This document shows, in pieces, positions 1,114 through 37,155 of a stretch of DNA of 64,000 nucleotides. A program made the position numbers and the translations under genes. This DNA comes from Eukaryota sp. TZLM1-RC (lineage: Eukaryota; Protista; Metamonada: BaSk clade). The stretch is from the NCBI GenBank assembly GCA_040285825.1, contig JAUPSS010000003.1, forward strand, positions 310,001 to 374,000, written 5' to 3'. The notes under the pieces were generated by a model. The model made no database searches. It saw only the letters and a list, made by a program, of their open reading frames with translations, and was not told the DNA's origin. How positions within the stretch are numbered: position 1 is the first letter of the stretch; each line of letters opens with the position of its first letter.

Positions 1114-3291
1114 CATTGCTTAATTGAATACTTAATGTTTTCTTAATGTTATAGTACTTTTGGGTTTGATTTCGCTTTTGTTTGCTGTGCCTTTGTCATT
1201 TCGTTTCTTGTAAATCATTTAGTGTCATTCTTATTGGTTATTTTTATCATTTCTGTCGTTATTAAAGCAATAATACAATATGGATACATTCAAAAATTCT
1301 ACATCACAGGATATAGTTCAGCAAAATAGAGGAATTTTTTCCTTCGTTCTTGTCTATATCCTTATTTGGATGTTAATCTACCTAAAATTAAGTCCAAACT
1401 CTGTGTTTCGTATTTTGTTTTAATGGACATGATTCAATTCTAAATAATTGTGTTAACCACTTACTTCCTTTTTAGAGCATTGTGATGTCTACTTTTTTTG
1501 ACCAAATCACACAAATCATTGTGTAAATATTCTCTTGGTTGTGACTGAGTTGACTTAGACGGTGACCTAAAAGTGTTGCAAGCTCAGTATTTTACGTTGA
1601 CTGTTAAAAGGAAAAATAGATATTTTGTTATTAATAGAACCTGCGCTTTATTTGATTAAAATTTAACACTTTACAAAATGAACACATGGGACGAAATTCA
1701 TTGAACCAAAATTCCCTCTAGGATATTGCGATCTTCTTGCTTTCAAGCTATTGGTTCTCTGAATTGATAAAAAGCAATGGGTTCTATTGATGATAGCAAA
1801 ATGAATAAGACAACGTGATAATAATTTAAAAATAATTCTTCAAATAAAATGAAGCAAAGTGTTGAAGGTTTCAAAAACCATGTTAGATTTTCCCCACTAG
1901 ATTAGCCAAACTTTCAGATGGTTCGTTGAAGAATCCCTCTATCTAGAATAGGGTTGAGGAAATTTGTTTCATTGTTGAAGACAGTATCTTTCACAATGGA
2001 TGAAATAATACTAATAAATATTGATATTTGATAAATATTTATTGAATATTAATAAAATCACAATCCAACTCAGAGGCAAAGTCCATAACTGTTGTTAGAA
2101 CATCTAATTCAGCAGGGTTACAGTGGGGGACTACGTAAAATTCCATGTCGCGTGTGATGAAGCATTCAAAGGTTCCTTCAATTCTCAAAATCTTGTGGGT
2201 ACGGGTTGAACTGAGTTAACAACAGCTGAAACAAGGCCAAAAAGAGGCGTTGAGCTGTATTTTTGATCTTCTAATATGTCATTATCGTCAGCAGTGACGT
2301 TATTGCTGATATCATCACCTGGGGGTTTGGTTAGAGCAAAAAAGTTAGAAGCTAATCTAGAACCACATCTTTGAATATGGGTAGCGGCACATTACAAGCA
2401 GTGCTACCCAGACGACTTAGAAGGGCTAGAAACTATACGGACGGGTCCGCACAAGAACTGGTGGCAGTTTTGGCAGAGTTGCGAAGGGTTGTGGATGACT
2501 AGAACCTGAAGACATCATCTAATAGCACAAAAATATCAGATAGTCGTTGAGTTGTCGGTGAATGTAGGTGGAATGAATGAAAAAGTGAAAACCAAGTTGA
2601 AGGTTAAAAACCAGCCAGAATAGGCAACCAGAAGTGGAGAATGGGGTGACAAGTGCAAAATTTGATAAATAAGCTCATTATTTTCACTACATGTCAGACG
2701 CACCCCCTGGTCTAAAAAGGATTCAGAATTATATGGATTCGCTGCTGAGTGAAACCATCCAGGAGCAAGCTTGCATTGAGCCCTACTGGGAGCTCATTTC
2801 CAGTCCTCCTGAGATTCCACCTTCACAGGTGAGTTCTTGTTCAACCAAATGTAACAAGGGAACTTTTTCTCATGAAGACTCTCCTTACCATTTGGTTCAA
2901 AATAGACTACTTGGTCAGATTGTCTCTTCCTCTTTTTTGGTTGATAAGGGTTAATATGTCCAAGTAGTCCATCACGAAGTTATTATCAATTGTTTTTTAA
3001 TTAATTGTTCCACGTTATTGATTAAAAAACATTTTATATTCCTTCAAGAATACACATTATATATGAATTTGTAGGACGTGTCTGGGGCACGAACCTGGAA
3101 GCTGTATGTGTTTCACACATCAGTGTTTCCACCCACAGCCTGTTTATAGAAGGGAGTAATTCATTTTGTGTTTATTTTGGAGAGATTGATGACATATCTG
3201 ATAAAATATTTTTTAATTTTTTATTAAAAATTAAATAAATTTAATTCCTTTTTATAATAACAATATATATTTCAAAAAATTAATTTATCAG

Positions 3292-3495
3292 GTGGAGGGC
3301 AACAAAGTAATGATTTCAAAGACAGCTGGTTAGATGATGAAAAAATCACTGATTCGATCAACAACTTTATCAATCAGTCATCAACTCCACTGTCACATCA
3401 CAAAATACTTGTTTGGCCCATCGCATCAGCCCTATTGATAACTAGGGGATTTGTTCAAGAGGATTTTTGCTCACAATTGATCAATTCTGGCGACG
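3292..3495 (+). pseudogene. N-terminal part of a Ulp1/SENP(C48)-like protease domain, cut by the Gypsy insertion
   Basis: DSWLDDEKITDSINNF resembles the Ulp1 WLnDevInfy motif; the frame joins exactly to 10580 onward across the GACG TSD (..INSGD|EENTLIHQPYND..). 5' boundary uncertain. Confidence 0.7.
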
Positions 3496-3666
3496 TGATG
3501 ATCTGTGGGGGTTAGACATTGAGTATACCTAAAATGTAATGAGATTTATTACAAGGGAATAGGGATTTCCCTTAACTTAAGCGCATGGGCGCAATGATAC
3601 AATAACTATAAATAAACTATAAATAAACTATAAATAAACTATTATAAATATTATCCAAGGCTAACA
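3496..3666 (-). repeat. 3' LTR (171 bp) of Gypsy-1
   Basis: Differs from 10416-10575 by 3 substitutions and one extra 11-bp tandem unit. Confidence 0.95.
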
Positions 3667-6600
3667 CTGCCCTTTCTTCTTTTCGAGCGTCGAGGCCTGA
3701 TAGGAGTAGGATTAACATTATTATTAATATTATCAGAACGACGTTTACGGCGGGAAGGACGAGAGCGAGTATTAGATATAGACTTGGAGAATACTTTGTA
3801 AGCAGAGGTGTTTTGAACAGTCGAAACCAGTTCAGTGGTAATATGATTGCCAGGCCATTGGACTTGACAGTAATCACCATCCTGACTGAGGACTTTCTGA
3901 ATCACGTGCTCTTCTGCATCGTCAGCAGCAACCCAGGAGTGAAATTCATCATCTGCTGGTAAACTGGAATGCCAAGGTTGGAGGTGCTTCACACTGGCTG
4001 TAACAACCATACCAGTACACAGATTCTTGATATCAGCGGTGGAGGTAGAGGGTGTGTCAATAACTAAGAATGGCCCTTTGTAATTACCATGTAACTTAGC
4101 AGTGGAAGACGAAGCTCGTTTGACCAATTGGCCAGGAGAGAAAGGGTTGGCTTCGATTTGGGAATCACGAGGAGGAGCCTTGGAAGCTTGATGGAGCTCT
4201 GCTTCCTCCTGTTTCTTCTTCAATCTGGCAAATTTGGATTGGATGTCATTAATGTAGGTTGACTCAGACGTTGAGCTTTCCAGGGTCTCTATGATTCTGC
4301 CGGGGTCAGCTCTGGGGTTAAAATCTGAACCAAACATGAGCTCGTATGGAAAGTAACCTGTAATCGAACTCTTGGATGAGTTGATTAACAATTGTACATA
4401 GGGTATGTACTCTGACCATGCATCGTAGGCGTTAAAATCTACGAGCAGCTTTCTCAAATTCTGCAAAATGTCACGGTGACGGCGTTCGACTAGACCGTTG
4501 GACTGAGAGAAGTGAGGGACGGACTTTGAGACCTCTATGCCCAAAAACTCACATAGAGCGTCGAAGACAGCTTTAGAGAACTCAGGACCGTTGTCACTAT
4601 GAACTATGAACGGGATCCCGAATATCGCGCATACCTTCCATATGAGAGCGTCAGTAGTAAGGTTGGTGTTGAGTTCTTTGAGAGGGACTATGATAGTGAA
4701 CCTCGTGAAGCTATCCACAAATACAAGAATGTATCTGTGGCCGTCTTGATCTTCTGGAAGAGGACCAATGACGTCGACGTTAACTCTTGCAAATGGTCTG
4801 TCAGCCCACAAGGAACCAGTTGTAGGGACATGCAGTTTGGGGACTGCTGCTGTCTTCTGACAGGAGGGGCATTCCTGGACGTGCTTGGTCGTGTCAGAAA
4901 GCATGTTAGGCCACCAGTAGTCACTGTTCTTGAGTCTGAGGAGACTTTCTGCCTTACTGGGGTGGCCACCTTGCAGAAGTCCATGTAGAAGGTTAAGCGT
5001 ATCCTTAACCAGTGATTGAGGAATCACGATCTTGTGCTCTGGAGTTAGATAAAGATCTAGACGACTATCCAAAGTACAGTTGTTAAACGAGGTGTCCTGG
5101 TTAGCGAGGGCTCGCTTTTGTTCGGACCTGATCTTGCAGAGCCAAGGCTCGAAGAGTGGAAGGTCATTGGAGCATTTATCTTGAAGGATAAGCACCTTCT
5201 CGAATGTATGGAGATCTTCAACGAAGCATCTCTCTGACTCAGTTTCATCAATCCTATTTGTGTAGTAGATAGGGTGAAACTCTTGGTCGTTGGAATGGAC
5301 CAAATGGTTGATGGTATGATTGTCTTGGGGCGGTACTATCCTAGATAGCATGTCTGCCCAATGGTTCTCTTCCCCTTTTGTGTGAACGATGTCGAATAGG
5401 AACTCAGAAAAGATGGGAAGCCACCTTCTGACTATTCTGTTTTTGTTCGGAGCGGTGAGCATGTAAGTAAGGTTTTGGTGATCTGTGAAAATGATCAGGC
5501 GCCTTCCTTTGAGGTAGTTCTCGAAGCCACTTTCGGTAAGCATGAGAAGGATAGCATAAAGCTCTTTCTGTACCGTGGGCCAGTTCTGCTGGGAGTTAGT
5601 CAACAATCTGCTGAAGAAGCTGATTGGTCTACATTTCCTATTGAGTAAGGAAGTACCAGGGTCCTTAGTGGGTTCTATTTGTTCCCAAATCACGCCGCCA
5701 ACTGCTATATCAGAGGCATCGCAACTAATTAGTACTTGGTTATCCACCGGAGGTAAGTTTAGAGGCATATGCTCCGCGATCAGGCGTTTGATTTCGGCTA
5801 AATGGTGGTCGTGAGTGTCTTTCCACTGCAGGCGACGTGGTTTGCCGTGTGTTAATTTGATGATCGGGGCAACATGCTTGGTTACCTGGGGAAGCCATTC
5901 CCTAATGAAGTTGACTGAGCCGATAAGGCTACGGGCGTCTTTCACAGTCTTAGGTCTGGCAAGATTCAGTAAAGACTCTGTGCGTGTAGGATCAATGGTC
6001 CTGGTTTTGTGTTGGAATCTGCTACCAAGGATCTTTATTGGGTGTCTAGAGGACACAAAATGGCACTTGGGCAGTCCTAGGGTTCTAGCTTCCTCGAGGA
6101 CACGTCTTAGACGTCCGAGGAACTCGTTGAAGGTTCTACCTACTATAATGATGTCATCTATATAGATGAATACACCGTCTCCGGAGAAGATGTCTGCCAT
6201 AACGTTCTGGAAAACTGCAGGAACGTTCTTGAGGCCGAAAGCAGCACGTTTAAACATGATACTTTTGCCAGAGATGCTTAAGGCAATCTTCTCCCAGTCC
6301 TTTTCTGCAATCTTTAGTTGCCAAAAGGCTTTGGGGAGGTCAAGGGTACCGATGAAATTGGCTTCCGAAAGGAAGACTAGCACATCGGATATTCTGGGGA
6401 GATTAGGTTCAACAGGAATAGTGTTGGCGTTGACTCCGTCCTTGCCGCTGTAATCACCAGTAAGGCGAGGCTTACGATGATCAGGGTATACCACAAGACA
6501 TACTGGAGAGCTGAACTCATGGTTCGATGGTACAGCAAATCCAGACTCGACGAGTTCATCGAAGATCTGTTCGGCGACTTTCTGCTTCTCGGGGTTTAAC

Positions 6601-7247
6601 CTACGAGGGGGTCGTCTGACTCGAATACTTTCATCATGAAAGTTGATCTCCATTGAAGGACAGTCAATCCCATCAGCATGCGGCTTAAGGGTGAATGTCT
6701 CTTCGAACTCTTTCAAGGTTAGAAGTAAGGTCTTCTTGTCGTTATCACAGTCGAGGTTAATAGTACAAGCAGAAGACTGTATGTGCTCCAACCAACGTCT
6801 GGGGACGTTGACGACATCTGAGACTTGGGAGATTCGATGGTCGAATTCAGCCTCAGGCAGAAGTAATGTACGATGTTCCTCATCCATCTTGATGAAGAGG
6901 CCTTCATCGTTCAATAAGCCTAGGTGATGCAACAGGTCTCTACCAATTAGTAACATATTGTTGCCAGGAATGATGGCCAAGCTATGTTTCACATGAACTA
7001 ATTGGGTTACACTACCGAGTCTGAAGCTCAGTGTGCCTTCTGCTGATCCTAAAGACTTCGACATGATGTTGTTTGCAGACTTAAGGTTTATGCAATGGTT
7101 AGTCTTTACCATGTTGCATCTCTCTGCTAAATCAACAGTGATGACTGATATCGAAGCTCCAGAGTCGATGATCCCTTCTATTTCGCAGTTATTTATTGAA
7201 AATTTCAATTTTAAATTTTTGCGTGCGACATCTGAGGTGCGAACCAT
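3651..7247 (-). CDS. pol: Gypsy Pol polyprotein (protease, RT, RNase H, integrase, chromodomain-like C-terminus)
   Basis: IIDSGASISVI protease; YIDDIII RT; CDASDIAVGG RNase H; H..GGHP..CPSC and DDE core (HSDNGPEF, VERRHR) integrase; HVIQKVL..CQVQWPG chromo-like tail; uninterrupted 1198-aa frame. Confidence 0.95.
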   Translation of the reverse strand: MVRTSDVARKNLKLKFSINNCEIEGIIDSGASISVITVDLAERCNMVKTNHCINLKSANNIMSKSLGSAEGTLSFRLGSVTQLVHVKHSLAIIPGNNMLLIGRDLLHHLGLLNDEGLFIKMDEEHRTLLLPEAEFDHRISQVSDVVNVPRRWLEHIQSSACTINLDCDNDKKTLLLTLKEFEETFTLKPHADGIDCPSMEINFHDESIRVRRPPRRLNPEKQKVAEQIFDELVESGFAVPSNHEFSSPVCLVVYPDHRKPRLTGDYSGKDGVNANTIPVEPNLPRISDVLVFLSEANFIGTLDLPKAFWQLKIAEKDWEKIALSISGKSIMFKRAAFGLKNVPAVFQNVMADIFSGDGVFIYIDDIIIVGRTFNEFLGRLRRVLEEARTLGLPKCHFVSSRHPIKILGSRFQHKTRTIDPTRTESLLNLARPKTVKDARSLIGSVNFIREWLPQVTKHVAPIIKLTHGKPRRLQWKDTHDHHLAEIKRLIAEHMPLNLPPVDNQVLISCDASDIAVGGVIWEQIEPTKDPGTSLLNRKCRPISFFSRLLTNSQQNWPTVQKELYAILLMLTESGFENYLKGRRLIIFTDHQNLTYMLTAPNKNRIVRRWLPIFSEFLFDIVHTKGEENHWADMLSRIVPPQDNHTINHLVHSNDQEFHPIYYTNRIDETESERCFVEDLHTFEKVLILQDKCSNDLPLFEPWLCKIRSEQKRALANQDTSFNNCTLDSRLDLYLTPEHKIVIPQSLVKDTLNLLHGLLQGGHPSKAESLLRLKNSDYWWPNMLSDTTKHVQECPSCQKTAAVPKLHVPTTGSLWADRPFARVNVDVIGPLPEDQDGHRYILVFVDSFTRFTIIVPLKELNTNLTTDALIWKVCAIFGIPFIVHSDNGPEFSKAVFDALCEFLGIEVSKSVPHFSQSNGLVERRHRDILQNLRKLLVDFNAYDAWSEYIPYVQLLINSSKSSITGYFPYELMFGSDFNPRADPGRIIETLESSTSESTYINDIQSKFARLKKKQEEAELHQASKAPPRDSQIEANPFSPGQLVKRASSSTAKLHGNYKGPFLVIDTPSTSTADIKNLCTGMVVTASVKHLQPWHSSLPADDEFHSWVAADDAEEHVIQKVLSQDGDYCQVQWPGNHITTELVSTVQNTSAYKVFSKSISNTRSRPSRRKRRSDNINNNVNPTPIRPRRSKRRKGSVSLG

Positions 7248-10200
7248 GAAGATATGTGGGACTCTGAGTCTAAGTTCGAGTCAAACTCATGATTGAAACA
7301 GGGTTTATTTGGTGTTTCTATCGTTGTAGCTGTTTTGAAATTCCGGGTAGTCAAAGGATTAGTTAAACACTTAATCCACTGGTTGGAGACTGAGGTTTGT
7401 TTTATGTTTGGTGTTTTACGTGCTGGAGAGCTGTCTTGCTCTATAGTAAACAAGGAACATTTGTTTGAACGTTGCTTTGATGTATTACCTGTTGGAGAGC
7501 TATCTTGCTCTATAGTAAACATTGAATATTTATGGGAACGTTTATTACTACTAGAAGGGCCCTTGCCTCTTCCTCTACGTCTACCTCTGCCTCTACTACT
7601 ACTGTTACTACTACCCCTAGCCAAATATGCTCGAACGGCATCTGGGTTGGCATCTCACCATTGCTTGGATCGCTGGCAATCAGGGTCGGGACATTCGTCA
7701 ATAGAGTGGCCTGGAAAACCACAGAATCTACAGAGACCAGCTTTATCTCTTTCTTTCTTAATTTGCGACTTGCTCCTTTTGGTAAGTTGAGCAGGGGCGA
7801 CGCTGGAACCCGCAGGCTTAAATTTGCCTATTCTTTTCTTGTCCTTTGGGTTTGCTCTAACATAGTGACCCATATGTTGTTGATAGCTGTCACTGATGTT
7901 GGCCCTTTGCTCGTCATAGGATCTTGCTGAACACCAACTCATGTATTCAGCAGCAAGGATGTCGACAAATTGTTGTAAAGTATGGTGTTGCCAAACATTG
8001 GGTGTGGACCATACTGTTCTCAGGTTGTCACTGATGGCCTGAATACCAACAGAATCGATCATATGGGTTGCAATTTCCCAGTTTTGAATGCGCTGTAGGA
8101 AATGTTGACCATACAAGGCACGGTCGCTTGCCCTGACGTCAGAAATGGCGGTACTTCGTGAGACTGTTCTCTTTAGCCTCACAGTGAAGTCGCCCCAGCG
8201 ATTCCTAAAGTCCTGAATATTCCAATTCATCTAAACTCTATATAACTGATTCCTCGCCGTTTCTAAAGTACTATACTGGCTGAGGTGTAAAATTGATTCC
8301 CATATTTGCTCCTCATTAATGTTGTCGATAGCTGAGATACTATCAGACATAAACGTAAACCTGCCTTGAGCTCTCAGAGCGGCCAAGCACTCTGGAGTAA
8401 CACAGGAGGCAATCCTACGAGGGTGGGTTTTCTAGGACGACCACCTCTTTGTCTATCTCTATCTCTATCTTGTGAACTCGCCATAGCTTCCATCAGTACA
8501 GTGTTGGAATACTGGGGAGCTATGGGAGTGTTAGAAGGAGTTACTCCTAGGAGCCTAGGGTCCTGAGGAACCTGGGAGGGAGTTGATGGATCCTGAGATT
8601 GGACAACTACAGGTTGTTGCATAGTTTCAACAGTGTCAGTAGTTGCCATTGGCTCATCTTGTTTTTGGTCATCTTGAGGCTCAATGCTCAAAGATGAGAA
8701 AACTGTGTCTGTCTCAACTGGGTCAGGCTCAGAAGTTCTCAATTCTACTGGGTCATGATCGCTCGGATAGTAACTTTGCACATTACCATCGATATTGACC
8801 CACAGAAGAGAACTAGAATTGGTGACACCAATGTTCTCCTGTACATTCATCAGGGCATCCCTTAGTGGCCTATTCCTTCTATGCTCCGGACCAAAATATG
8901 ACGCGCAATGGTCTGGTCTGCGGTCTTGAAGGTACAATCTTTGGTAGTTCGTAGTGTAAGTGTACCACCATCCAGTCCTGAAGTCTCTATTGATATAAAT
9001 ATCAAGAGAGGCATTGTATCCTGGGCTAAACCTGGGGAAAGGACATGGGTTACATCGGTTGAGGAAGAGATTCAGCTCATCACCAGCGAAGATCCTCTGT
9101 ACACCTTCACGAGGAGTTCTGAACCCTCCAACAGTATCCCGTTGAGGATAATTTGGAGGGGTTCACAACAAACCGTAAGATTGTCTACTTCCTCCGTTGG
9201 GAAGTAGGGGCCAATTCTTCTGCGTATCCTAAAGCCGTGATCATTAACCACTTCTGGACCCCAAAATGGGGGTAAAGCAGCAATGAGTTCATTGGGAGGA
9301 ATCGATGCAGGACCTCCTTGCATTAACTCAATACCAGCATTGAGAACTAAAGTTTGAGCTTCAGTCCTCTGCTGAGTAGAGATGAAAGGAGAATCTGATT
9401 CCTGGGGCTGGCTTGGAGCTTGATAGGTGTTAGGCTGTGCAGCGCTAAGCACCTGCCAAGCAGCAGGAACAGAAGAAACAACGTGACCTTGCTGAGGAGT
9501 CTGACCAGAGGTTGGGGGAATATGAATTACTCCTCTAGTAGGAACTCCCGAAGGAGGAACAGATGGAGTTGAATGGACTTCTGTAGGAGCTACCGTAGTA
9601 GGAGCAGAAGTATTAGGAGGACCTGCTACAGGAACTTCTCGAGAAGGAGTAGTAGGATTAGAGTTACCAGCAGGGACTGCAGGAGGAGCTGGTTGTTGCG
9701 GAGGGCTGCTTTCCATAGGAACTTCCCTAGAAGGAATGGAAGGAGCTTGTTGTCTTTCCCCAGGAGCTTCCGTAGAAGAAGTAGAAGGAACTTGTTGTCC
9801 TTCCCCAGGAGCTTCCGTAGAAGAAGTGGAAGGAGCAACAGGAGCGCAAACAATAGGTGAAGAGGGAGGCTCTACCCTCTTGAGCTTCAACAGCTCAGAT
9901 ATCTTGTTGCTGGCCGAGTCAGGGTCAGTCTGGTTGATGATATACTTCAGATATTCATCTAAAGTACTGAACTGTTCAGGACCTAAAAGATAATCTTCAA
10001 CCTCTCCTTCAGAACCAGGGGGAGGAGAAAGAGGTACAAAGTTTTCCACATTAGAGGGAGGAACAGGAAGACTGATAGGAACCACAGGAACGTCATCCGT
10101 AGATGGAGTGGAACCTTGACCCGAGGGTAGAGAGGAAGTATCACTTCTCTCGCCACCAGAGGGTTGTTCTGTTCCCAACTGAGGAGTTTGGGAGGAAGAA

Positions 10201-10439
10201 CTTGTAACATTGGGTTGTGTAACAGGATCTCCGGAGGGAGGAGTTAACACAGGAGGAGGAGAAGCATTGCTTCCCTCGGACCCAGTTGACAAGGGTTGTT
10301 CTGGTCCCGACTGAGGAGTTCGGGAGGAAGAACTCGAAGAGTGAGACGTAGGAGGATCAGTCCTAACAGTCTCGGACTTGTCATTGGAACCACCCAAAGG
10401 TGATCCAATACGTATTGATGATCTGTGGGGGTTAGACAT
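7211..10439 (-). pseudogene. gag: Gypsy Gag region with long Pro/Ser-rich N-terminus, broken by stops and frameshifts
   Basis: ORF pieces 9072-10439, 8374-8937, 7655-8230 (CRFCGFPGHSIDEC zinc knuckle) and 7211-7624 (same frame as 7655-8230 across a TGA); ATG lies inside the 5' LTR. Confidence 0.8.
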
Positions 10440-10575
10440 TGAGTATAGCTAAAATGTAATGAGATTTATTACAAGGGAATAAGGATTTCCCTTAACTTAA
10501 GCGCATGGGCACAATGATACAATAACTATAAATAAACTATAAATAAACTATTATAAATATTATCCAAGGCTAACA
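10416..10575 (-). repeat. 5' LTR (160 bp) of Gypsy-1
   Basis: Direct repeat of 3496-3666 with TG/CA termini. Confidence 0.95.
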
Positions 10576-11913
10576 GACGAAGAAAATACATTGATTCATC
10601 AACCCTATAATGATGCATTTCATGAATCAAATTTGATTGCATCTGTTGACGAGCAATTTACCATTGGGCAACAATGGGTACTTGTTGCATTCTGGATCAA
10701 ATCCAGAACAGTAAGAGCTTTTCTTTTTGATAGTCTTCGTCATAATGAAGAACAACATCAAAAAATTAATTCAATAATGTTTGAAAAACTTGGAATCAAC
10801 ATCAGTCAGAATACATCTGTATTTTTTCAATCTAATGTGTATGATTGTGGAATATTCACCATATTGTTTGCAAAAAGAATGATCAATTTGTTTTTGTCAA
10901 AACAGCTCAATTCAAATGATTCAGCTCATATTAAACATTTTGTCAATCAAGACAAAAGATGCTTTTATAGCTGTGTTGACAATGAACGAAAATTAGTTGA
11001 GACACAGAAATGCTCCTCTCCACAAAAAACTATAAGAAAAAGGTGAGCTGATGTATTGAGCACACCTTAGAAACATGTAAAAACACTTTTTAATGAGAAT
11101 CCGCTGACTTCATATAAATACCCTTTAGTCACAAGATCAAATGTCAAAACACAATTTACTCTCAGAATTTTACATTTTGATATTGAAACATTGGTGTTGG
11201 GTAAAAAGCTCAGTGATGAGGATGAAATAATTGTCATTTCTGCAAGACAACATTCCATCTCTTACTGTCAATCTACAAGAAAGACTGTTGCAAATTCTGT
11301 TTCTCATATTTTTACTCGAGCACAGATTGAATTAAATTTTTGTTTTTGTGATCTTGTAGAAAAGTCAACAAGCAGAAATGAATATTATTGCATAGTTGAT
11401 GATAACAATATCACTTTATATCATCATTACTCTGAAAAAGAATTGCTAAGTTCATTTACAAAATAATTGGAAACTTATAATCCTCATATAAAATGTGGTT
11501 TTAATATTCTCAAATTAGACATTCCACATATTATGAAACGTTTTGAAAATGAGGACTTTTTTAAGGGTGAAATCGGTGCTAGTAAATGGGTTCAATACTA
11601 TAACTCAAAATTAATAGAATTGAATCACAAACACTTGAACCCCTTAATTGCTGGTCGATTTATTGTTGATACTTGTAGTATTTACACAAATTATAATCAA
11701 CCACGCAAACTAAACACAGTTTCTAAAATTTTATTAGGGTAGAGTAAAATTGACCTTGATCCTCAATAAAATGCAAAGTATTGGAAGGTTCAACAAGATG
11801 ATCCCTTCTCAGATTTTTGCTTATCCCAAAGAAGAACTGCAGTCGCAGTTTATTGTTTAAGGGACACAGATTTAACCATGAAATTATTTAATTTCTTTAA
11901 CAATGACCAATTC
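10576..11913 (+). pseudogene. Ulp1/SENP-like protease C-terminal half followed by a PolB-type DEDDy 3'-5' exonuclease domain (one frame, five in-frame stops)
   Basis: GQQWVLV..FDSL..QSNVYDCGIF (C48 protease; catalytic His read as Gln); ExoI LRILHFDIET, SEKELL, ExoII GFNILKLDIPHI, KLNTVSKILLG, ExoIII AVYCLRDTDL; all in the same frame. Confidence 0.8.
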
Positions 11914-14079
11914 ATGGAAACTGTTCAACATAAACCTTATGATGGTTATAAGGACAGTCTAAAAAAGTGTCATCAGAGATCCGAAAATGATTGAAGTGAT
12001 CGATGAGGCAGTAATTAGGTGTCAGCAAATTTCTATTGTTGGTTTAGAATTCATTTGTGGTTATTAATTGCATCTTTTTGACTTAAACCCAAATGCAATT
12101 TTACCAAAAATTGAAACCCAATTATTTCGTGACGCTTTTCTTGTGGTCACGTCCCAAAGTGAGGAGGAAAGTTCCCTTAACGCAAAGACAAAAACAGCTT
12201 TGCAAAATTCTCGTTGTGCCCCGTTGGTGGAATTCTATCATTCTTGTTCCAAAAGTTTTATCAAAAAGGAATAAGTAAATTTTTGTATTACACAATTGAC
12301 AAACTGATTGTGAATTTCAAAAATAACATCCAGCAGCATTACTTTGATTACTTAAATCGGTTTGTCGATGTTGTTCATGATGTTAAGAGAAACAACATTG
12401 TCCTGAAAAAGCAAGATAAGAAAAACTTCTCTTCATTCATCAACAAAGTTAAATCTCTCCTTCTAGAAGGATGTAGAGATGTTGATGGCGAAACTTCTGC
12501 AATGAGAAACAAAGTCCCATTAATTACTTCGCTTTTCATTAATTGCCGGATCCCTCTTTTACTTTTCAGTAATTTTAAAAGGGAAAAGTATTCAAAATTT
12601 GATTTTTCATCAAAATCAAAATGCTCTTTGAGGGCAACGTTTTATATTAAAAATTATTTAGAAGATGAGGAGAGCAAACTCTTTCATGCTGTGTTTTTGA
12701 AGAATTCTTGTATTCCCTCCTATATCAGAATTGACAAGACAAGTTTATTGGACTTGTTCTTTGTCGAATTCAAGGATATTCTTGGTCAAAGGTCGTCCTA
12801 CCAATGCAATAATCAAGCTGCTGATTTGGTTTTATGGAATACCTTCTTGAAAATGGATAGGATAAAAACACTAAACATTATTCAGAAAATTCCAAGTACA
12901 TCATGTCTAGTATCGAGACTGATGGAATAGCAGTTAGTTTCATTCAATCTAGAATGGACTTGAAAAAGTACAAGGTAACTGCAAAAAAATTAAAAGATAA
13001 AGAAAAATATATTGATGATCCCAGCATCAATCCTTCTGAATTCCAAGAGCTGCTGATCCAGGGAAGTCTGATCTACTCTATTTTCTGCCAATTTAGCTAC
13101 TGGAATGACACATTCAAATAAACCTGAGAGAGATAAATATGTTCATTTCAGGTACACTCAAAATCAACGAAGATTTGAGTCGAAAAGTTCCAAATTCAAA
13201 AGAATAAGAGACAGCATACGGAATGACACTCTGATCACAATAAGTAAGTCTACTGGTAGAGTGATTGATCTATCCAATTATGAACCATCTGAAAAGCAAC
13301 AACAAAGGATGCATTTAAACAGCAGTATAATTAATCAAATGACTGAAAGAACAATTAGTTTATTAAGAGGAAAAGTATCTCAAGAAATCAATTTTCCCCT
13401 AGAAATTGATAACTCATTAGATTTGAGAAATTATGATCACACGACTAAATCTGTAGCAGAATGGGAAGCAACTTTGTCCTATTTCAATTCCAAAAGCGAC
13501 AGATTTGATAGATTTATGGAGTATATTAAACAAAAGAATTATGCGAATAGTATTGTTGGTGACGTCTATCATCAAAAAATATTTAGGAAACTAAGATGGT
13601 GGGCTGAGATTAATCGCACAAGATCTGAGGCGAAGATGATTCAGAGATTCAAATCAGTAATTGGTGATCCCAGCCAAGTAGTTATTGGAATCGGAGACTG
13701 GGAACAACGAAAACACATGAAGTTCAAAGAACCTACCAAGGGAAAAGGTTTGAGATTTCTATTTAAAAAGGCTGATTATAAGGTCTTTTTAATTGATGAG
13801 TTTTGAACCAGTTGCTGTTGTTTCAACTGTAGGAAAACGGAGAAAACAGTTGAAACATTGCGATGGTGCAGAAATCCTAGGCCATGGAAGAGGCATGAGA
13901 TGTCTATTCGTCACGGGCTTACCATGTGTAAATCATGTGAAAGTTTGTGGAATAGAGATCGAAATGCATCGCTAAATATGTTGGCGGTGATGGAAGCACA
14001 TGTAAATGATGGAGATAGACCAGGATACCTGCAGAGAGTCAAGGTTGGGGGAGGCTCAAAGAAAAAGGTATCGAGATGA
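11914..14079 (+). pseudogene. Fanzor (Fanzor1-like, TnpB-derived RuvC nuclease), disrupted
   Basis: N-terminal KDSLK..IEVIDEAVIR; IETDGIAVSF; RuvC-I AADPGKSDLLY (after frameshift); VIGIGDW; DEF*TS-CCCFNC; NPRPW; CKSC..WNRDRNASLNM RuvC-III. Confidence 0.9.
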
Positions 14080-16535
14080 AAATCTCGATTTCTGATGCAA
14101 ACTCTGATACCCTTGAAAAACTTCAAAAGTTGCATCCTCAAGAAAATTTCAAGTGCAGCAAGCCTGAAGTGTGTCCTTTTTGGATTGAAAACCCTATTAC
14201 TGCAATTGAAGTTCTTAAAGCTATTCAAAAATTGCCAAAGGGGAAAGCAGCAGGCCCATCTGGAATTTCTTTTGATCTGTTAAAAATAGCGTGTTCCAGT
14301 GCTCCCGAAATTGCTGATGATCTAGCCCACTATTTTCAACAATTGATTGTTTTGAAAATTAATCCTCCATTTGAATTACTCGCAGCACGTCTGATTGCTT
14401 TAGTAAAGCCTGGAAACGGAATCAAACCTGATGGAATACGCCCAATTGCTGTTGGTGAATCTCTTTCTCGTTTGCTAGCATCAATTGTCTTCGATCGTGT
14501 CAAAGACAAAGCTTCTACATTTTTGAATCCTCATCAATTTGGAATCAAAACAATTGATGGTGCTTCTGTTGCTGCTATTGCCTCTGATACCTTTTTTAAT
14601 GCAGAGGAAAATAATTTTATTTTTAATCTCGACTTTAAAAATGCTTTTAATTCTGTAAAGCGAGAAGCAATTTTTGAAGTTATTAAATCTGATTTTCCTG
14701 AGCTATCGAGTTTTTTCTACCATTTTTATGGGAAAGAATCAGATTTAATTTTTAATTCATTTGGTCTGAAATCATCTTCTGGAGTGAAGCAGGGAGATCC
14801 TTTAGGCCCATTATTGTTTTGTTTAGCTATTCACAAAACTTTAAATATCATTAAGCAAAAATACCCTTCTATAAAAATAGTTGCTTATATGGATGATATA
14901 TCCTTGATTGGTTCATTTGATTTACTAGAATTGGTTGCTCATGAAATTGCCGATTCATATGAAAATATTGGGCTTCATCTTAATGCCAGCAAATGCCTTC
15001 TGATTGGCTCTTCTGCTCAAGACCTCGTGATAAACGATTCTATTGTCCCTTTTACTAATTATAGTAGTGATGCTTTTAGGTTCCTTGGTTGTTGGTTAGG
15101 AAATGTGCCTCAAATTCAGAATGAATTGCAAGTTATTTTAGAAAAAATGAAAGTTGAACTTGATTCAATTTCTTCTTTAGATATAGAAAAGCATATTAAA
15201 TTTTTCATGCTTAAAATTTGCTACACTGGGAGAATAACCCACATTTTGAGATCTTGTGCTCCTTCCATAGCATTAGATTTTTGTCGTTCTTTTAATTCAT
15301 TGAGAACAGAATTTTTTGCTGATTTATTGGATGTAGAACCAGGAACGTTGAAAAGCCATTTATTTTCTTCAGCAAATTTGGGTGGTATTGGTTTTACTAA
15401 ATCTTCAATTTTGTGTCAATCAGCATTCTTGGGTGGTGGCAAAAATTTTATTTATGAATTTTCTCGTAGATTTCCTGATGATTCTCATCTGTTAGTCCCC
15501 AATTGTAGTCCCTTTTTGTATGAGTTATCTTGTGAACTTGAAAAATTACCGCCACAAATTTGGACCAAATGTTTTCCTCAATCAATTCAAGAAATTCCAA
15601 ACCGATCTCTATTTAATTTACAGTTTTGCTGTAAAAAGCTTCAACAAAAATTGTCAAAGATTTTTGAAAGCTTGGATTTTGATGTTTGACTTGGCTTGGC
15701 CAAGAAAAAGAATCCCGCTTTTGCAAATCTTTTACAAGATATGTGTGACAGTACTTCTTCTGCCTTAGTAACAACAATTCCACAAGTTTATGGTACTCTC
15801 TTATTCGATTCTGCTTGGACTTTGAATATGAGATTTCGTTCCTTTATCTGGCCTGATAATTTACCTCATAATTTAATTTGTAAATGTTCTCGAGAAATTA
15901 CAACTACTCATTTGTTAAATTGTAAACATTTTATTACTTTTAGAAGCAAGGTTCATGATGCTGTAAGAGACCAGTTATATTCTATGTGTAAATCTCATAG
16001 AATTGAATCCTTCTTGGAACCTTTGTTGTCAAATCTGTTTGATGCTGAAAATGATTTTCATAAGAATAATAGAGGTGATGTCATATTACCTGGATTAGAT
16101 GGAAGCTTCATTTTATTGGAATTAATGTCTGTTGATCCTTGTAATGCCTCAAATGAAAGGCTTGTTAATTCTGAAATTCATAATCCCCTTTCAAATGCTG
16201 AAAATTTTAAATTCAAAAAATACTATGAACCATTGTCCAAATTGGCCAGTCTACAGCATGCAAAATACAATTTGTATCCATTTGTATTTTCCCTTTTTGG
16301 TTCACTTGCACCAACTGCTTTACGTTTTTTGGATGATTTTGAAATGATTGTAAAGAGAAGAACTGGCAGAAATTTCAACAGATTGTTTTGGCAAAATAGA
16401 ATTGTGTTTTCTATTTTTAAGGGGATGTTGAAGATGGTTTCTGATGCTTTGCTTTCTCTTGGATCTCACTATGAGAGAGTTGCATCTAGTGTTTTTGTTT
16501 TGGGAGAGATGGATTTTTTAGATGTTGATTTATAG
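14076..16535 (+). pseudogene. RT - zinc knuckle - restriction-like endonuclease ORF with a single in-frame TGA (15687-15689)
   Basis: IRPIAVGE, QFG, DFKNAFNSV, GVKQGDPLGP, AYMDDI; CKC..H..C, RSKVHDAVRD, RGD, KFKKY, PFVFSLFG; paralog at 22417 has Arg at the stop position. Confidence 0.9.
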
Positions 16536-24910: not shown

Positions 24911-25479
24911 TATGGAAGTTCAATAAATATAAGTATTTCATTCTGATTATGAGTTTCTTCACCTTTTCCTTTTGCTGATCTTTAATAGGTCTTAAAATCA
25001 ATTTTCTTTTGTGGAACTGAAAAACAAAGCCTTCTTTTAAAGTAATGCAATCAAAAAAATAGCCAATGTCATTTTTGGTCTTGGTACTAAGTTACATTTT
25101 GAGCACCATTTTATAAGATGCAAGATTTCGTTCAATGATATAGGTAGTTTCATTCCCACTCTCTAGATTAACTCTCTCAAGTAATTCAGTTTTAGGAATT
25201 TCAGTGGTTTTATGAAGCGATTCAACTTGAAACCATGTACAAAATTATTGTATCAATAATGAAGAAAACAACAGCAATCTGTAAGCAAAATATGTTTCCT
25301 TAAGTCGTAAACGTAAGATAAAGTTGATTGATTTTTCTCTTATTCTATTTAAAACCAAAGCCGCCATCATACAAACCATATGGTGGTCAGTATTCAAGAA
25401 AATATTCATCTAAAAGGTAACTTAAGCAACAATCGATCAAAGTTGATGGAATGTCCTGGTATGACAGCCCCTATGACAT

Positions 25480-25960
25480 ACTATTAAACAAATTAGAGTG
25501 TATAACAGTTGAAACAAATTTCAAAGAAAACTCTACATCAAAATGATTTTCCATCTTTCTGCAAGGCAAAAAACAATTTGTGTCTTTATGTTGGAGCTTT
25601 TAACTGAACATAAATAAGAGTCATGAAACTATGAACATTCATGGACACAGAGAGGGTTGAAGCAAAATGGATGAATGAATTTCAATTTAAATTTGGAGAT
25701 CCAAAAAATAAAATTGTAGTGATTGATGATTGGAAACAAACAAATTTTAGACTTCAAGCATCTGTACAGAATGTTGGTTATAGAGAGTTGTCTAAAATAT
25801 GTAACTTCCGTCTATTGCTCTTGGATGAATATAGAACTAGTTGTCGATGTCATGCATCTGTACTTAAGAGGAAAGAATGCCAAAATGAAAAGAAACATCG
25901 AGTACCTAATCCAAGACCTTATAGGAGATCAAAGATTGCAACAGTCTCAGACAAGGAATA
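25480..25960 (+). pseudogene. Fanzor C-terminal remnant
   Basis: EAKWMNEFQFKFGDP..VVIDDW..LLDEYRTSCRC..PNPRPY, homologous to 13620-13900; RuvC-III missing; boundaries approximate. Confidence 0.8.
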
Positions 25961-26557
25961 CTCACTTACTAGAAGTCGATGTTTATGGAATTTTATTGTC
26001 AAGCATAAAGCTCCAATAATAGTAATAATTTTATCAATGAATTAATTAATTTCGAATCTGAGAAGGAATATAGATTTGGTTTAAATAGTTTTTGCACGTT
26101 GATGACTTTCAATCATCAACAAAAATTACTTTTGATGTTACCAAAGTTGGAGGTTACGGTAATAATTGGAGTGATGCGTTTTGGAAAGCTTAATCAGATA
26201 AGATTTAAAAATATTCGATTTGAAAGAATTAAATTTAATTGAACAAATTGTACCTTTGGCTTTTAGTGTTCATGAGGTTTTTTAAAGTAAAATTAAACTA
26301 ATTTTTGACCAATTTGGTTGGAATGAGGTGGCAGATGAAATAAGTCGCTTCATTTTGAAGAATAGCTTTAAATGCCACAGTGCTTTTAATTATATTCTTC
26401 AAAAGACAAGAGAAGAACGTCAGTGTTGGTAGATAGTGTTATTTTAGTTTTCGAATGGTTTCCCATCAATCTTTAAAAGCAAAAAGTTCATGATTCATTT
26501 CATCCTTCAGAATTCTCACCAGGTCACAACTATTTGACCTTTCTGTTCCATTAACTG

Positions 26558-34047: not shown

Positions 34048-34511
34048 ATTTCCAGAATTTAAATAATGAATTGGAGGAGATTCCTGGATCGAGAAGTTGC
34101 CAATAAAGGGTACGAACAGTATGTTCAATAATCTTCTACTTACCTGGAAACCTTGATGCTTTTGATAAATTACATTTAATGACTGTGATTGCGGGCTTCT
34201 TCAATAGTTCCTGAATTGTATCCAAGTTCAACTAATTGAAAATTTTAATCAATAGCTTGCAATCATTTACATAATAATCAGCCAGTTTTTGGAATTTGAT
34301 TGAATCATACATAGCATACTCAATAAAATTGAACAGTAAAAATAAACTCAACTTCTTAACATGAACAATATTGTATTTTGGTTAACGTTTTCTGTGAATT
34401 ATGTAAAATTTCTGTTTTAAATATTTCATAAGAAAAATTTTCCACTAGCTTGTGTTTAGTGTTTAAAATTTCTAAAACTTTTTCGCAAAAAATATTTAGA
34501 TTGTTCCCCAA

Positions 34512-35160
34512 GCTCTGAATTGTTCTAAATTGCTAACTTATCGTTCTTCACTACATGATGCTGTTAGAGACACTGTTTTCAATATGGCACAAACTGCAAG
34601 AATATCGTGTATCAAAGAGCCCCTGCTGAAGGAAACACTTTCTCTGAATAATTTTGGTTCTGATGATAGAGGTGATGTATACTGTGATTGGATTAATAAC
34701 TCTGAAGCTGTTGTTGACTTTGTCTCATGTAATGTTGCAAACGATACTTTGGTTCACAGAAGAAAACTTAATCCTGTGGCTGCTCTGGATTTTAAAGCAA
34801 AAGAAAAACATAGAAAATATGATAAAGAAATTGAAGATGCAAATATCGATAGAAATACACAGCTGGTTTTTATTGCTTTCCCATTTTCGATAAATGGAAG
34901 ATTATCAGAAGAAGCAGAAACTTTTTTGAATGACTTCCAAAAAATGGTGCAAGAAAAAACAATGAAAAGATTTGATATTTTTTATGGCGTTCACGGATTC
35001 AATTTGCCATTATTAATAGATTACCACGGTTTTTCAATCGAATAAGAGAAACTTTGGCTAGACAGCAAGCAGATCAAGATTTTGTATAGGAAATCTTGGT
35101 TAAATGATTGTCGTCCCATTAGTTATGAGTTAATTTTATTAAGTGTGCAAATTCAATAAA
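34512..35160 (+). mobile_element. CRE-like RLE fragment (second family)
   Basis: Copy of ~21765-22390; RSSLHDAVRD, RGDVY, KHRKY. Confidence 0.82.
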
Positions 35161-37155
35161 TTTTTCCAATTGTTCCCCCTTTGATTTTTGAAAAATTGTC
35201 CATAATTACCGTGAAAAGATCGAGACTATTTAGACCATTAAATTTTTTTCATAGTGGTTAAGATACTGTCCTTACCGTTTGTTTGATTCGAAATTTGCAA
35301 CACCTGAAACTACTATTTCTAACCGCTTATACACAGACGGTAGATCAATGATGTTGAACTGAATTCAATAATGAGGTCAGGGTTAGTTGAAGTTATTAAA
35401 TTGAAAAACGAAAGTATCATTTCCAATTCATTGTTGGCTCTGTGTTCTGTTGTGAAACTTGATAGAATAAAAGAATTATTGTTCCAATGAAGTTAATGAT
35501 AATGAACATTAGACTCATTTATGTTTTTCTGAGCAGAAGTCATACCACATTAAATTATAACTAATGGGTCACTGCCAATATTTGGCTGGAGTGAATTGAA
35601 TGAGTAACGATCTGAATTTGCATCGTCATCCTTTTCTACATAATCATTATCACCATCAACATCATTATTATCAATATCATCTGTTTTGACTTCAATAGTA
35701 TTTGACCGTAAAACAGTAAGCTGGTTTTTAATGTCAGATCGGCTAGACATTGTTTCAATATCAAAGAATATAATCTTGGAGTTATGTTCAGTAGTGGATA
35801 ATTTATGTTTCTTGCGTTTAAGAGTAAGTCCACAACCAAAAAGAGAAGGATGGTGAAGAAGTACCAGAAGTGTCCAAATTTTGAGGGTAATGAGAACCAG
35901 TTGCAGAAGATGTAGAAAGCAAAAAGGCTAGCAGGCGTTTGTGTTTTTCAGAGTTGGAAAGAGGTGTGGAATATGCCATGGTGGAAGCATCAATTTCCAA
36001 GTTCAGCGACGCAGGTGGTGTGTCTGACATGTAATGAAAATTATGAGCTTCTCTATCAATTTTTGCACTTGTCATCCGATTCTCGACTCCTGATTTCTGA
36101 GGTTTTTGACCCTCAGCATGGGCAACAATTGTTGTTGTGTTGTTGAACAGCAGAAAAAAATTTCTGCTTGGTCTCTTGTCATTGTTCCCCTCATTAGATG
36201 AAAGATCAAGCAAAAAAATCAAGCATTCTACTGTAGAACACACATGTTATTGAACGAGGTATTTTTCCTTAAAAGATGAAATTGGTTTAGCCCATTTAAT
36301 GATTCTATTGTAATTCCAATAAAATTATTATTCTGTTCGGCAATGAAATCAACTTCTACAGGAATGTACTATATGAAAGGTGCTAATAACGACTGTGCAA
36401 GCAACATGGAAATGCTGCTAAAAATCATTGTCAATTTATCAATTTTCATGTATTTCTTTTATTGATACACAGCACCAAACAAGTAGAAATACTACCTACT
36501 GCCTTACTTCCATTCCACCTCTAAATCTTTAACCATCCACAGTACATCCACAGATTGTTTTAGCATTTGTAGCTTATATATACTACTTGATGAAACAATT
36601 ATTATTAAATAAATAGAATAAATAAATTTTTTCACCCGAAATATAATATAACATTCGTGTAGTTGGGCCCTGTTATTGTTGTTGATCAAGTCCAACGAGT
36701 TCTGACAATGTATTTGAATTATTTTCATCAGAAAACATCAACTCAAAAAGTAACATGTGGTGCTTAATTCGACACTGGTCCTTGATGTGTGAATAGATTA
36801 AGTTCACAGTGTCTGTGAAACTGTTTGCAACTGTAATCAATAATGTATACCGACTTTCCTTGTGACATTAACAACACCGGCAAGCTATGGAATGTACTGT
36901 CGATTGAAGAAATGCCATTCTCTTTTGAAACAGTTACTGGCGGTGACTGGGTGTTGTCTATCGCATCAATACATGAAATATCGTGAACAAAGTCGACACA
37001 TAATGCAGGATCAAGCAATATAAAAGTTCTGTACGAGCAGAAGGTGTTGAGTGAATAAGCGAAGCCGTGGATGATAAGACAGCATCTTTAGAATTTATTC
37101 TATATTTTGAAAAATAATTTTGAACAAATAATCAGTTCGTCCTACAACTATAAGA

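Follow-up and report, generated by a model that had tools for sequence, protein, structure and literature searches.

A transposon of the metamonad Skoliomonas litria that probably fused a PolB-type exonuclease to Fanzor1, with a CE-clan protease upstream

Fanzors are eukaryotic RNA-guided nucleases. Here we analysed a stretch of 64,000 nucleotides (nt), called the window below, which covers positions 310,001-374,000 of contig JAUPSS010000003.1 in the assembly GCA_040285825.1 of Eukaryota sp. TZLM1-RC (Skoliomonas litria), and which holds the remains of an unusual Fanzor-bearing element. Judging from the window and from sister copies in the same genome, this element is probably one transposon unit in which a leader, a CE-clan protease, a family-B polymerase-type (PolB-type) 3'-5' exonuclease and a Fanzor1 nuclease follow one another on one strand, the exonuclease and the Fanzor making up one fused frame. 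The host, S. litria, is a soda-lake metamonad (PMC11316075, PMC11603281).

Eleven other copies were fetched from the same genome by means of annotated protein fragments and were compared with the window for collinearity. Fragments of the Fanzor protein led to the loci L001, L002, L003, L005 and L006, and relatives of an 87-aa leader open reading frame (ORF) led to the loci L008-L012. A family consensus was derived by majority rule from the multiple alignment of the copies. Domain searches were run on separate stop-free pieces, uninterrupted paralogues standing in for the joined gene, and were read against the Pfam cut-offs (in bits) of 20.7 for Peptidase_C48, 23 for DNA_pol_B_exo1 (PF03104), 26.3 for TNB (PF07282), 21.3 for adenain C5 and 27 for ElaD. 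A HMMER search with the stop-free piece 13072-13803 against 1.84 billion representatives returned one match at 100% and three close fragments, all of them hypothetical proteins of TZLM1-RC. The parts of the element in the window are the following:

2447-2690, plus strand: 5' region of the element, its left end about 43 nt shorter than in L008 and L009
2691-2951, plus strand: leader ORF of 87 aa, a separate gene in the assembly annotation, with six annotated paralogous proteins
2952-3291, plus strand: stretch between leader and protease, decayed coding sequence or intron judging from the consensus, with AG at 3290-3291
3292-3496, plus strand: N-terminal part of the protease with the WLDDEKI motif, ending at the first GACG and directly joined to the C-terminal part in L008, L010 and L012
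3497-10576, minus strand: inserted Ty3/Gypsy long terminal repeat (LTR) retrotransposon, foreign to the gene, recognised by its LTR pair, its pol ORF and the empty paralogous sites
10577-10580, no strand: second GACG copy of the target-site duplication, recognised from the sequence and the empty paralogues
10579-11043, plus strand: C-terminal part of the protease (Pfam C48), with FDSL (catalytic Asp), QSNVYDCG (Gln and Cys) and the catalytic His, which is Q here
11044-11070, plus strand: linker with two in-frame stops, compared with copies L011 and L012
11071-11880, plus strand: predicted PolB-type DEDDy 3'-5' exonuclease, with ExoI FDIET at 11176, ExoII NILK(F)D with its Asp at 11518, and ExoIII YCLRD at 11851
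11881-14079, plus strand: Fanzor1 nuclease broken by five indels and three stops, recognised by its PDB relatives, RuvC motifs and TNB
14080-14085, plus strand: right end of the element, common to all copies

Without the Gypsy insertion, the element measures about 4.6 kb; in the window it spans approximately 2447-14085. The first-pass annotation had placed the gene at 3292-14079. The protease, the exonuclease and the Fanzor do lie inside these limits, but the element begins earlier, since the leader ORF opens at 2691 and the left end lies near 2447. The homology of L008 and L009 to the window begins at 2453, and these two loci share about 43 nt further to the left (from locus position 9710). 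On the other side, the homology of nine copies ends at window positions 14064-14085, and the sequence of the right end, ..GAAAATC, is common to all copies. Most copies have no stop where the TGA at 14077 closes the window frame, so that the consensus Fanzor frame leaves the element without a stop codon. The copies are 86-93% identical at the nucleotide level, and the collinear order recurs in L003, L009, L011, L012, L008 and L010. Their contents are the following:

L008: left end, leader and entire protease; deleted from there up to the last 74 nt, with the right end kept
L012: leader, protease, linker and exonuclease start; deleted from there up to the right end
L011: leader, followed by the C-terminal part of the protease, linker and exonuclease and, beyond a deletion, by the Fanzor C-half
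L009: leader and, beyond a deletion, the exonuclease from midway between ExoI and ExoII and an entire Fanzor
L010: leader and protease, with a retroelement inserted between them
L003: exonuclease (starting in the same region as in L009) and Fanzor
L001, L002, L005 and L006: 5'-truncated copies, starting at window positions 12657, 13020, 12827 and 13029, respectively

Thus exonuclease and Fanzor are contiguous in L003 and L009, and protease, linker and exonuclease are contiguous in L011. The varied 5' truncation points, found together with an exact shared 3' end, are not what is usually seen in DNA transposons; copying that began at the right end and was aborted might explain them. In the window, a CRE-like non-LTR retroelement (14086-15689; RVT_1, E 2e-23) abuts the right end and its ATG overlaps the window TGA; in L002 and L005, the ORF that comes after the end of the Fanzor is not a reverse transcriptase.

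We confirmed that a Ty3/Gypsy element interrupts a gene that was once continuous. The two LTRs of this element (3496-3631 and 10416-10551) are 98% identical, and its minus-strand ORF (3651-7247, 1198 aa) encodes reverse transcriptase, RNase H and integrase in the Ty3/Gypsy order. The target-site duplication is GACG, with the first copy at 3493-3496 and the second at 10577-10580. The Gypsy element is missing at four paralogous sites, and the empty site in L010 (8640-8720) carries a single GACG (..caattctggtgacgaagaaaac..). The early proposal that excision at GACG rejoins the gene in frame proved correct: 3321-3494 meets 10579, and two uninterrupted paralogues concur. Indeed, the stop-free pieces L010:8508-8774 and L008:10602-10853 cross the insertion point unbroken (..QLINSG(D/V)EENT..).

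The last and largest part of the coding region is a Fanzor1. Searches of the PDB matched only Fanzor 1 proteins, namely those of Parasitella (E 4e-22) and Spizellomyces (E 6e-17), and the split RuvC (DPGKS, LIDEFRTS and WNRDRNA) aligns with the Parasitella Fanzor 1; in the window, these RuvC motifs lie in shifted frames because of the private indels of this copy. The TNB zinc ribbon (PF07282) reaches 29.5 bits in L003:9923-11143, above the cut-off of 26.3, and 15.7 bits in the broken piece of the window. At the N-terminal side, the residues encoded by 11963-12064 align to residues ~12-72 of stand-alone Fanzors, and a conserved Met (METV, near 11926) occupies the place where Fanzors usually begin, some 20 residues beyond ExoIII. 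Hence the protein shares its RuvC motifs, its TNB and its N-terminal region with the known Fanzor1 nucleases (SpuFz1 of Spizellomyces punctatus and PpFz1 of Parasitella parasitica), which are likewise transposon-borne and eukaryotic. It differs from them in having about 270 aa of PolB-type exonuclease at its N-terminal side and a protease and a leader upstream. None of the best 150 representative Fanzor relatives has an exonuclease or a protease, which makes the exonuclease an addition to the Fanzor. The first-pass annotation had not recognised this architecture among described Fanzors, and our full-text literature search on Fanzor and TnpB agrees with it, having found engineered exonuclease fusions and no natural one. 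The nearest relative outside Skoliomonas, on an ENA contig (L004), lies beside a DDE_3 transposase.

The exonuclease is recognised by its profile as well as by its motifs. In the window, DNA_pol_B_exo1 is matched by two collinear pieces (profile positions 56-151 and 155-232) that score 20.4 and 14.2 bits, below the cut-off of 23. Sister copies pass this cut-off, with 30.2 bits for L011:12335-13015 and 36.7 bits for L009:10687-10920, and PolB_exo1 is present in 27 of the 30 nearest clusters in an Atlas feature search. The spacing of ExoI, ExoII and ExoIII, read from the coordinates, is 113 and 115 residues. ExoII reads NILK(F/L)D, with F as the majority state (NILKFD), and the DEDDy residues are all present. 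The domain therefore shows the same ExoI, ExoII and ExoIII order as the proofreading domain of family-B polymerases (PF03104), profile positions 52-232 of which are matched in sister copies. Unlike in these polymerases, no palm, fingers or thumb follows: as had been claimed, there is no polymerase domain after the exonuclease, and in the window, in L003 and in the consensus the frame enters the Fanzor N-terminus, which it reaches about 20 residues after ExoIII. Sequence searches of the PDB with the exonuclease pieces gave no match, hence no close PolB relative from that source, and AlphaFold modelling of a 177-aa exonuclease piece gave an unusable result (mean predicted local distance difference test score, pLDDT, of 32.7). 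There is no in-frame ATG ahead of ExoI in the exonuclease, which must therefore be translated from upstream.

The frame had been described as running without stop or shift into the Fanzor. All the quoted motifs, those of the protease as well as ExoI, ExoII and ExoIII, are indeed present in this frame, but the window holds five in-frame stops between 10579 and 11991 that had not been listed (11044, 11068, 11464, 11740 and 11767), and the description is true only from 11770 onward. The first frameshift, placed near 11965, corresponds to an extra base at 11967 that L003, L009 and other contigs lack. Three of the stops (11464, 11740 and 11767) are private to the window, the other copies having sense codons there. 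The indels are private too, and DNA contigs of other copies concur: +1 at 11967, -17 at 12240, -2 at 12283, -13 at 13049 and -1 at 13093. The window copy is thus a pseudogene, as it had been called, its Fanzor carrying five indels and three stops, with further stops upstream. In the majority consensus, 10579-14085 forms one frame with stops only at 11044, 11068 and 12062; an unbroken ORF of 330 codons leads from the exonuclease start to the Fanzor N-terminal region and is followed by 679 codons to the element end. Moreover, a stop-free piece of 78 aa in L003 (7118-7351) extends over the exonuclease-Fanzor junction. As far as the paralogues can show, exonuclease and Fanzor formed one reading frame in the family ancestor, the stop at 12062-12067 being ambiguous. 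The alignment also demonstrates that the predicted catalytic residues of the protease, the exonuclease and the Fanzor were intact in this ancestor.

The protease was first taken for an Ulp1-type C48 peptidase. Its motifs and its membership in the CE clan hold, but the family scores are divided among C48, C5 and ElaD. Indeed, the window piece 10579-11043 reaches 21.1 bits for Peptidase_C48 (cut-off 20.7), and its sister copies match other families, L011 scoring 20.8 bits for adenain C5 (cut-off 21.3) and L008 scoring 18.1 for ElaD (cut-off 27), so that only the CE clan is secure. In the PDB search, the weak protease match was XopD, and a homologue search with the protease piece found no match among proteins of 85-271 aa. 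The catalytic His is encoded by CAT in L008, L010, L011, L012 and the DNA contigs of other copies; in the window it has become CAA (A instead of T at 10674), and GQQW is thus a private change of this copy. His, Asp and Cys together with Gln are all present within the family (FDSL, QSN.YDCG), in the order usual for CE-clan proteases (Ulp1/SENP C48, adenain C5 and ElaD/SseL), where the Gln is that of the oxyanion hole. What sets the protease of the element apart from them is its place ahead of an exonuclease-Fanzor gene. CE-clan proteases are also carried by viruses and by transposons such as plant Mutator-like elements (MULEs) and Polintons. In L012, the protease contains a simple-repeat expansion (10770-10960; YLF/ILF runs in translation).

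The leader ties the protease to the 5' end of the element. It has no Pfam match, and six other annotated TZLM1-RC proteins are 70-90% identical to it; all five loci reached through its relatives hold parts of the element downstream. The leader TAA at 2952 becomes CAA in L008, L009 and L011. In the majority consensus, the leader ORF continues until about 3235 and is followed by the opening of the protease frame at about 3276. An exhaustive GT..AG search for an intron between leader and protease yielded many solutions, none of them outstanding. The introns of the host, in the annotated genes of L002, L003, L005, L008 and L011, measure 28-34 nt and are mostly of the form GTATG...YAG. A module of about 110 nt that ends just past the leader ATG (window 2592-2709) recurs on the minus strand at 36121-36012 and, again on the minus strand, in L001 at 13899-13788; in L001, it precedes ORFs that have neither a Pfam match nor similarity to the element.

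The idea of a triple-fusion gene stands in part. Protease, exonuclease and Fanzor lie in one repeated unit and exonuclease and Fanzor formed one ORF in the family ancestor, but the TAG at 11068 makes the presence of the protease in the same product less certain. The other linker stop, the TGA at 11044, is private to the window and reads CGA in L011 and L012, and protease and exonuclease share one frame in the consensus. The balance tips slightly toward the protease having stood in one ORF with the rest of the gene, and we infer that it belonged to the same translation product, or at least to the same transcript. Other arrangements of this junction were considered. A 28-nt GT..AG intron at 11043-11070 would have the size of host introns, but without it the frame would run into a stop, and L011 and L012 lack its GT. 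A 2A motif (NPGP or near variants) was found neither in the window element nor in L003 and L008-L012.

Several observations weigh against a large fused gene that served the element as a whole. The TAG at 11068 is found in two of the three copies that cover it (the window and L011), L012 having TTG (Leu). In L011 it is put out of frame by a 7-nt deletion. Since the distances among these three copies are star-like, parsimony slightly favours an ancestral TAG. Further on, a stop occurs at 12062-12067 in all three covering copies, though at adjacent codons: the window reads TAT TAA, and L003 and L009 read TAA TAT, which fits an ancestral TAT TAT. The conserved Met at the Fanzor start means that the Fanzor could also be made alone. 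Every copy found is dead and none is intact; a profile search for family proteins of 502-1598 aa gave only stand-alone Fanzors of about 675 aa and no long protein of TZLM1-RC, and searches of viral and metagenome contigs with the exonuclease and junction pieces gave no relative with an exonuclease. Finally, we estimated the ratio of non-synonymous to synonymous substitution rates (dN/dS) pairwise among copies by the Nei-Gojobori method. The ratio is 0.26-0.6 for the Fanzor C-half and 0.36-0.68 for the Fanzor N-half (pairs of at least 70 codons), compared with 0.48-1.3 (exonuclease), 0.48-1.7 (protease) and 0.57-1.6 (leader). For these last three parts selection is thus not demonstrable, and constraint is visible on the Fanzor only. 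These ratios weigh against a strongly selected role of the extra domains in the recent history of the family. An ancestral ORF that was open and catalytic residues that were intact weigh the opposite way.

The same ratios bring forward the view that protease and exonuclease were passive cargo, that is, functionless gene fragments captured by transduplication, and that the Fanzor alone, translated from the Met near 11926, mattered for the spread of the element. Their dN/dS of about 0.8 for leader, protease and exonuclease, compared with about 0.4 for the Fanzor C-half, is what this view would expect, and the pair formed by the window and L011 follows the same trend (12.5 synonymous and 45.5 non-synonymous for the exonuclease, 35.2 and 49.8 for the Fanzor C-half). 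The conserved Met at the canonical Fanzor start and the stand-alone relatives, which manage without an exonuclease, fit it too. We nevertheless consider it unlikely. Indeed, the ancestral exonuclease ORF stays open over about 270 codons in DNA of 30% GC with its DEDDy residues intact, and the consensus preserves the catalytic triad of the protease. The window alone has gained three stops in the exonuclease since its insertion, so that stops would be expected in the consensus if the domain had long gone unselected. Moreover, the domain boundaries are precise and in frame with the Fanzor, and a very divergent second relic, described below, appears to keep the exonuclease motifs. A chance in-frame juxtaposition of unrelated elements at one locus is scarcely credible. 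Such an accident might be suggested by the lack of a known functional link between the three parts and by the many nested transposons in the region, but the collinear order is found in six copies, and no copy starts at the Fanzor N-terminus. No copy among those fetched begins near 11914 beside unrelated flanks, the pattern that the first-pass annotation had named as telling against a fusion. The internal-deletion copies L008 and L012 retain both ends of the element, which refutes a chance juxtaposition.

A possible, though doubtful, arrangement is that of two products, in which the leader-protease ORF ends at the TAG at 11068 and the exonuclease-Fanzor is made separately, for instance through a splice from CAG/GTGAGT at 2829 to ..CCTTAG/ at 11070. 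The TAG, present in two of the three copies, lies in an acceptor-like context. The proposed exon 1 would stop at 2828, between two codons, and 11071 opens a codon of the exonuclease frame, so that the reading frame would be kept across the splice; the aligned copies retain the GTGAGT donor. In the second relic, on the minus strand, the leader is followed by a basic stretch and FDIET and no protease intervenes, a layout that such a splice would mimic. On the other side, the proposed intron would measure about 1.16 kb in a host whose introns have 28-34 nt, L012 has the sense codon TTG at the position of the TAG, and the consensus holds protease and exonuclease in one frame.

If exonuclease and Fanzor did act as one protein, we tentatively propose a division of labour between the domains. 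The tethered exonuclease would trim the 3' ends left by the Fanzor cut, and the trimmed ends would block simple re-ligation and so push repair to copying from the element-bearing template, which amounts to homing. The protease would either cut the polyprotein or strip SUMO-like modifiers from repair or chromatin proteins. A fuller picture, which we regard as rather improbable, is that active members encoded a single polyprotein in which an Ulp1-like protease freed or regulated the exonuclease-Fanzor, and that the exonuclease processed the RNA-guided cut in such a way that repair copied the element, giving a self-contained homing without any transposase. Engineered fusions of Cas9 or Cas12 with an exonuclease (e.g., TREX2-SpCas9) alter the repair outcome (PMC13370227). 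Like the arrangement described here, they tether an RNA-guided nuclease to a 3'-5' exonuclease; theirs are man-made with DnaQ/TREX- or T5-type enzymes, whereas this one is natural and of the family-B proofreading type, its activity being predicted from sequence.

If the fusion is real, a Fanzor would carry a 3'-5' exonuclease by nature, perhaps along with a SUMO-type protease, which would suggest that end processing and the choice of repair are part of how Fanzor transposons spread. A family-B proofreading domain that exists separately from its polymerase would moreover be a rarity, and genome engineers would gain a ready-made compact nuclease-exonuclease design.

Two other Fanzor relics lie in the window:

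36121-28944, minus strand: second, very divergent relic, with the shared 5' region, motifs and a Fanzor
25467-25991, plus strand: third Fanzor relic, limited to the C-terminal part, which shows about 30% identity to stand-alone Fanzors

The second relic starts with a 5' region with ATG of about 110 nt (36121-36012) that is 79% identical to the leader region, and it has no protease between leader and exonuclease. It continues with a basic stretch and an FDIET at 35765, the only other FDIET in the window, with a weak ExoII-like match at 35322-35492, with an inserted repeat at 34541-34981 and with YYVND at 34276; its Fanzor (32424-28944) shows 33% identity. The family exonuclease consensus matched this relic with a best E of 2.5, and pairwise BLAST matched the FDIET stretch only, so that its exonuclease rests on motifs. 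Two FDIES motifs on the minus strand (47028 and 63619) are chance matches, one lying in an integrase ORF and one antisense to an RRM gene. The inserted repeat (translation ..KISNL.IVFSCTIFWKSFKK..) is present in two exonuclease-Fanzor copies, at 7353-8540 in L003 and on the minus strand at 34541-34981 in the window.

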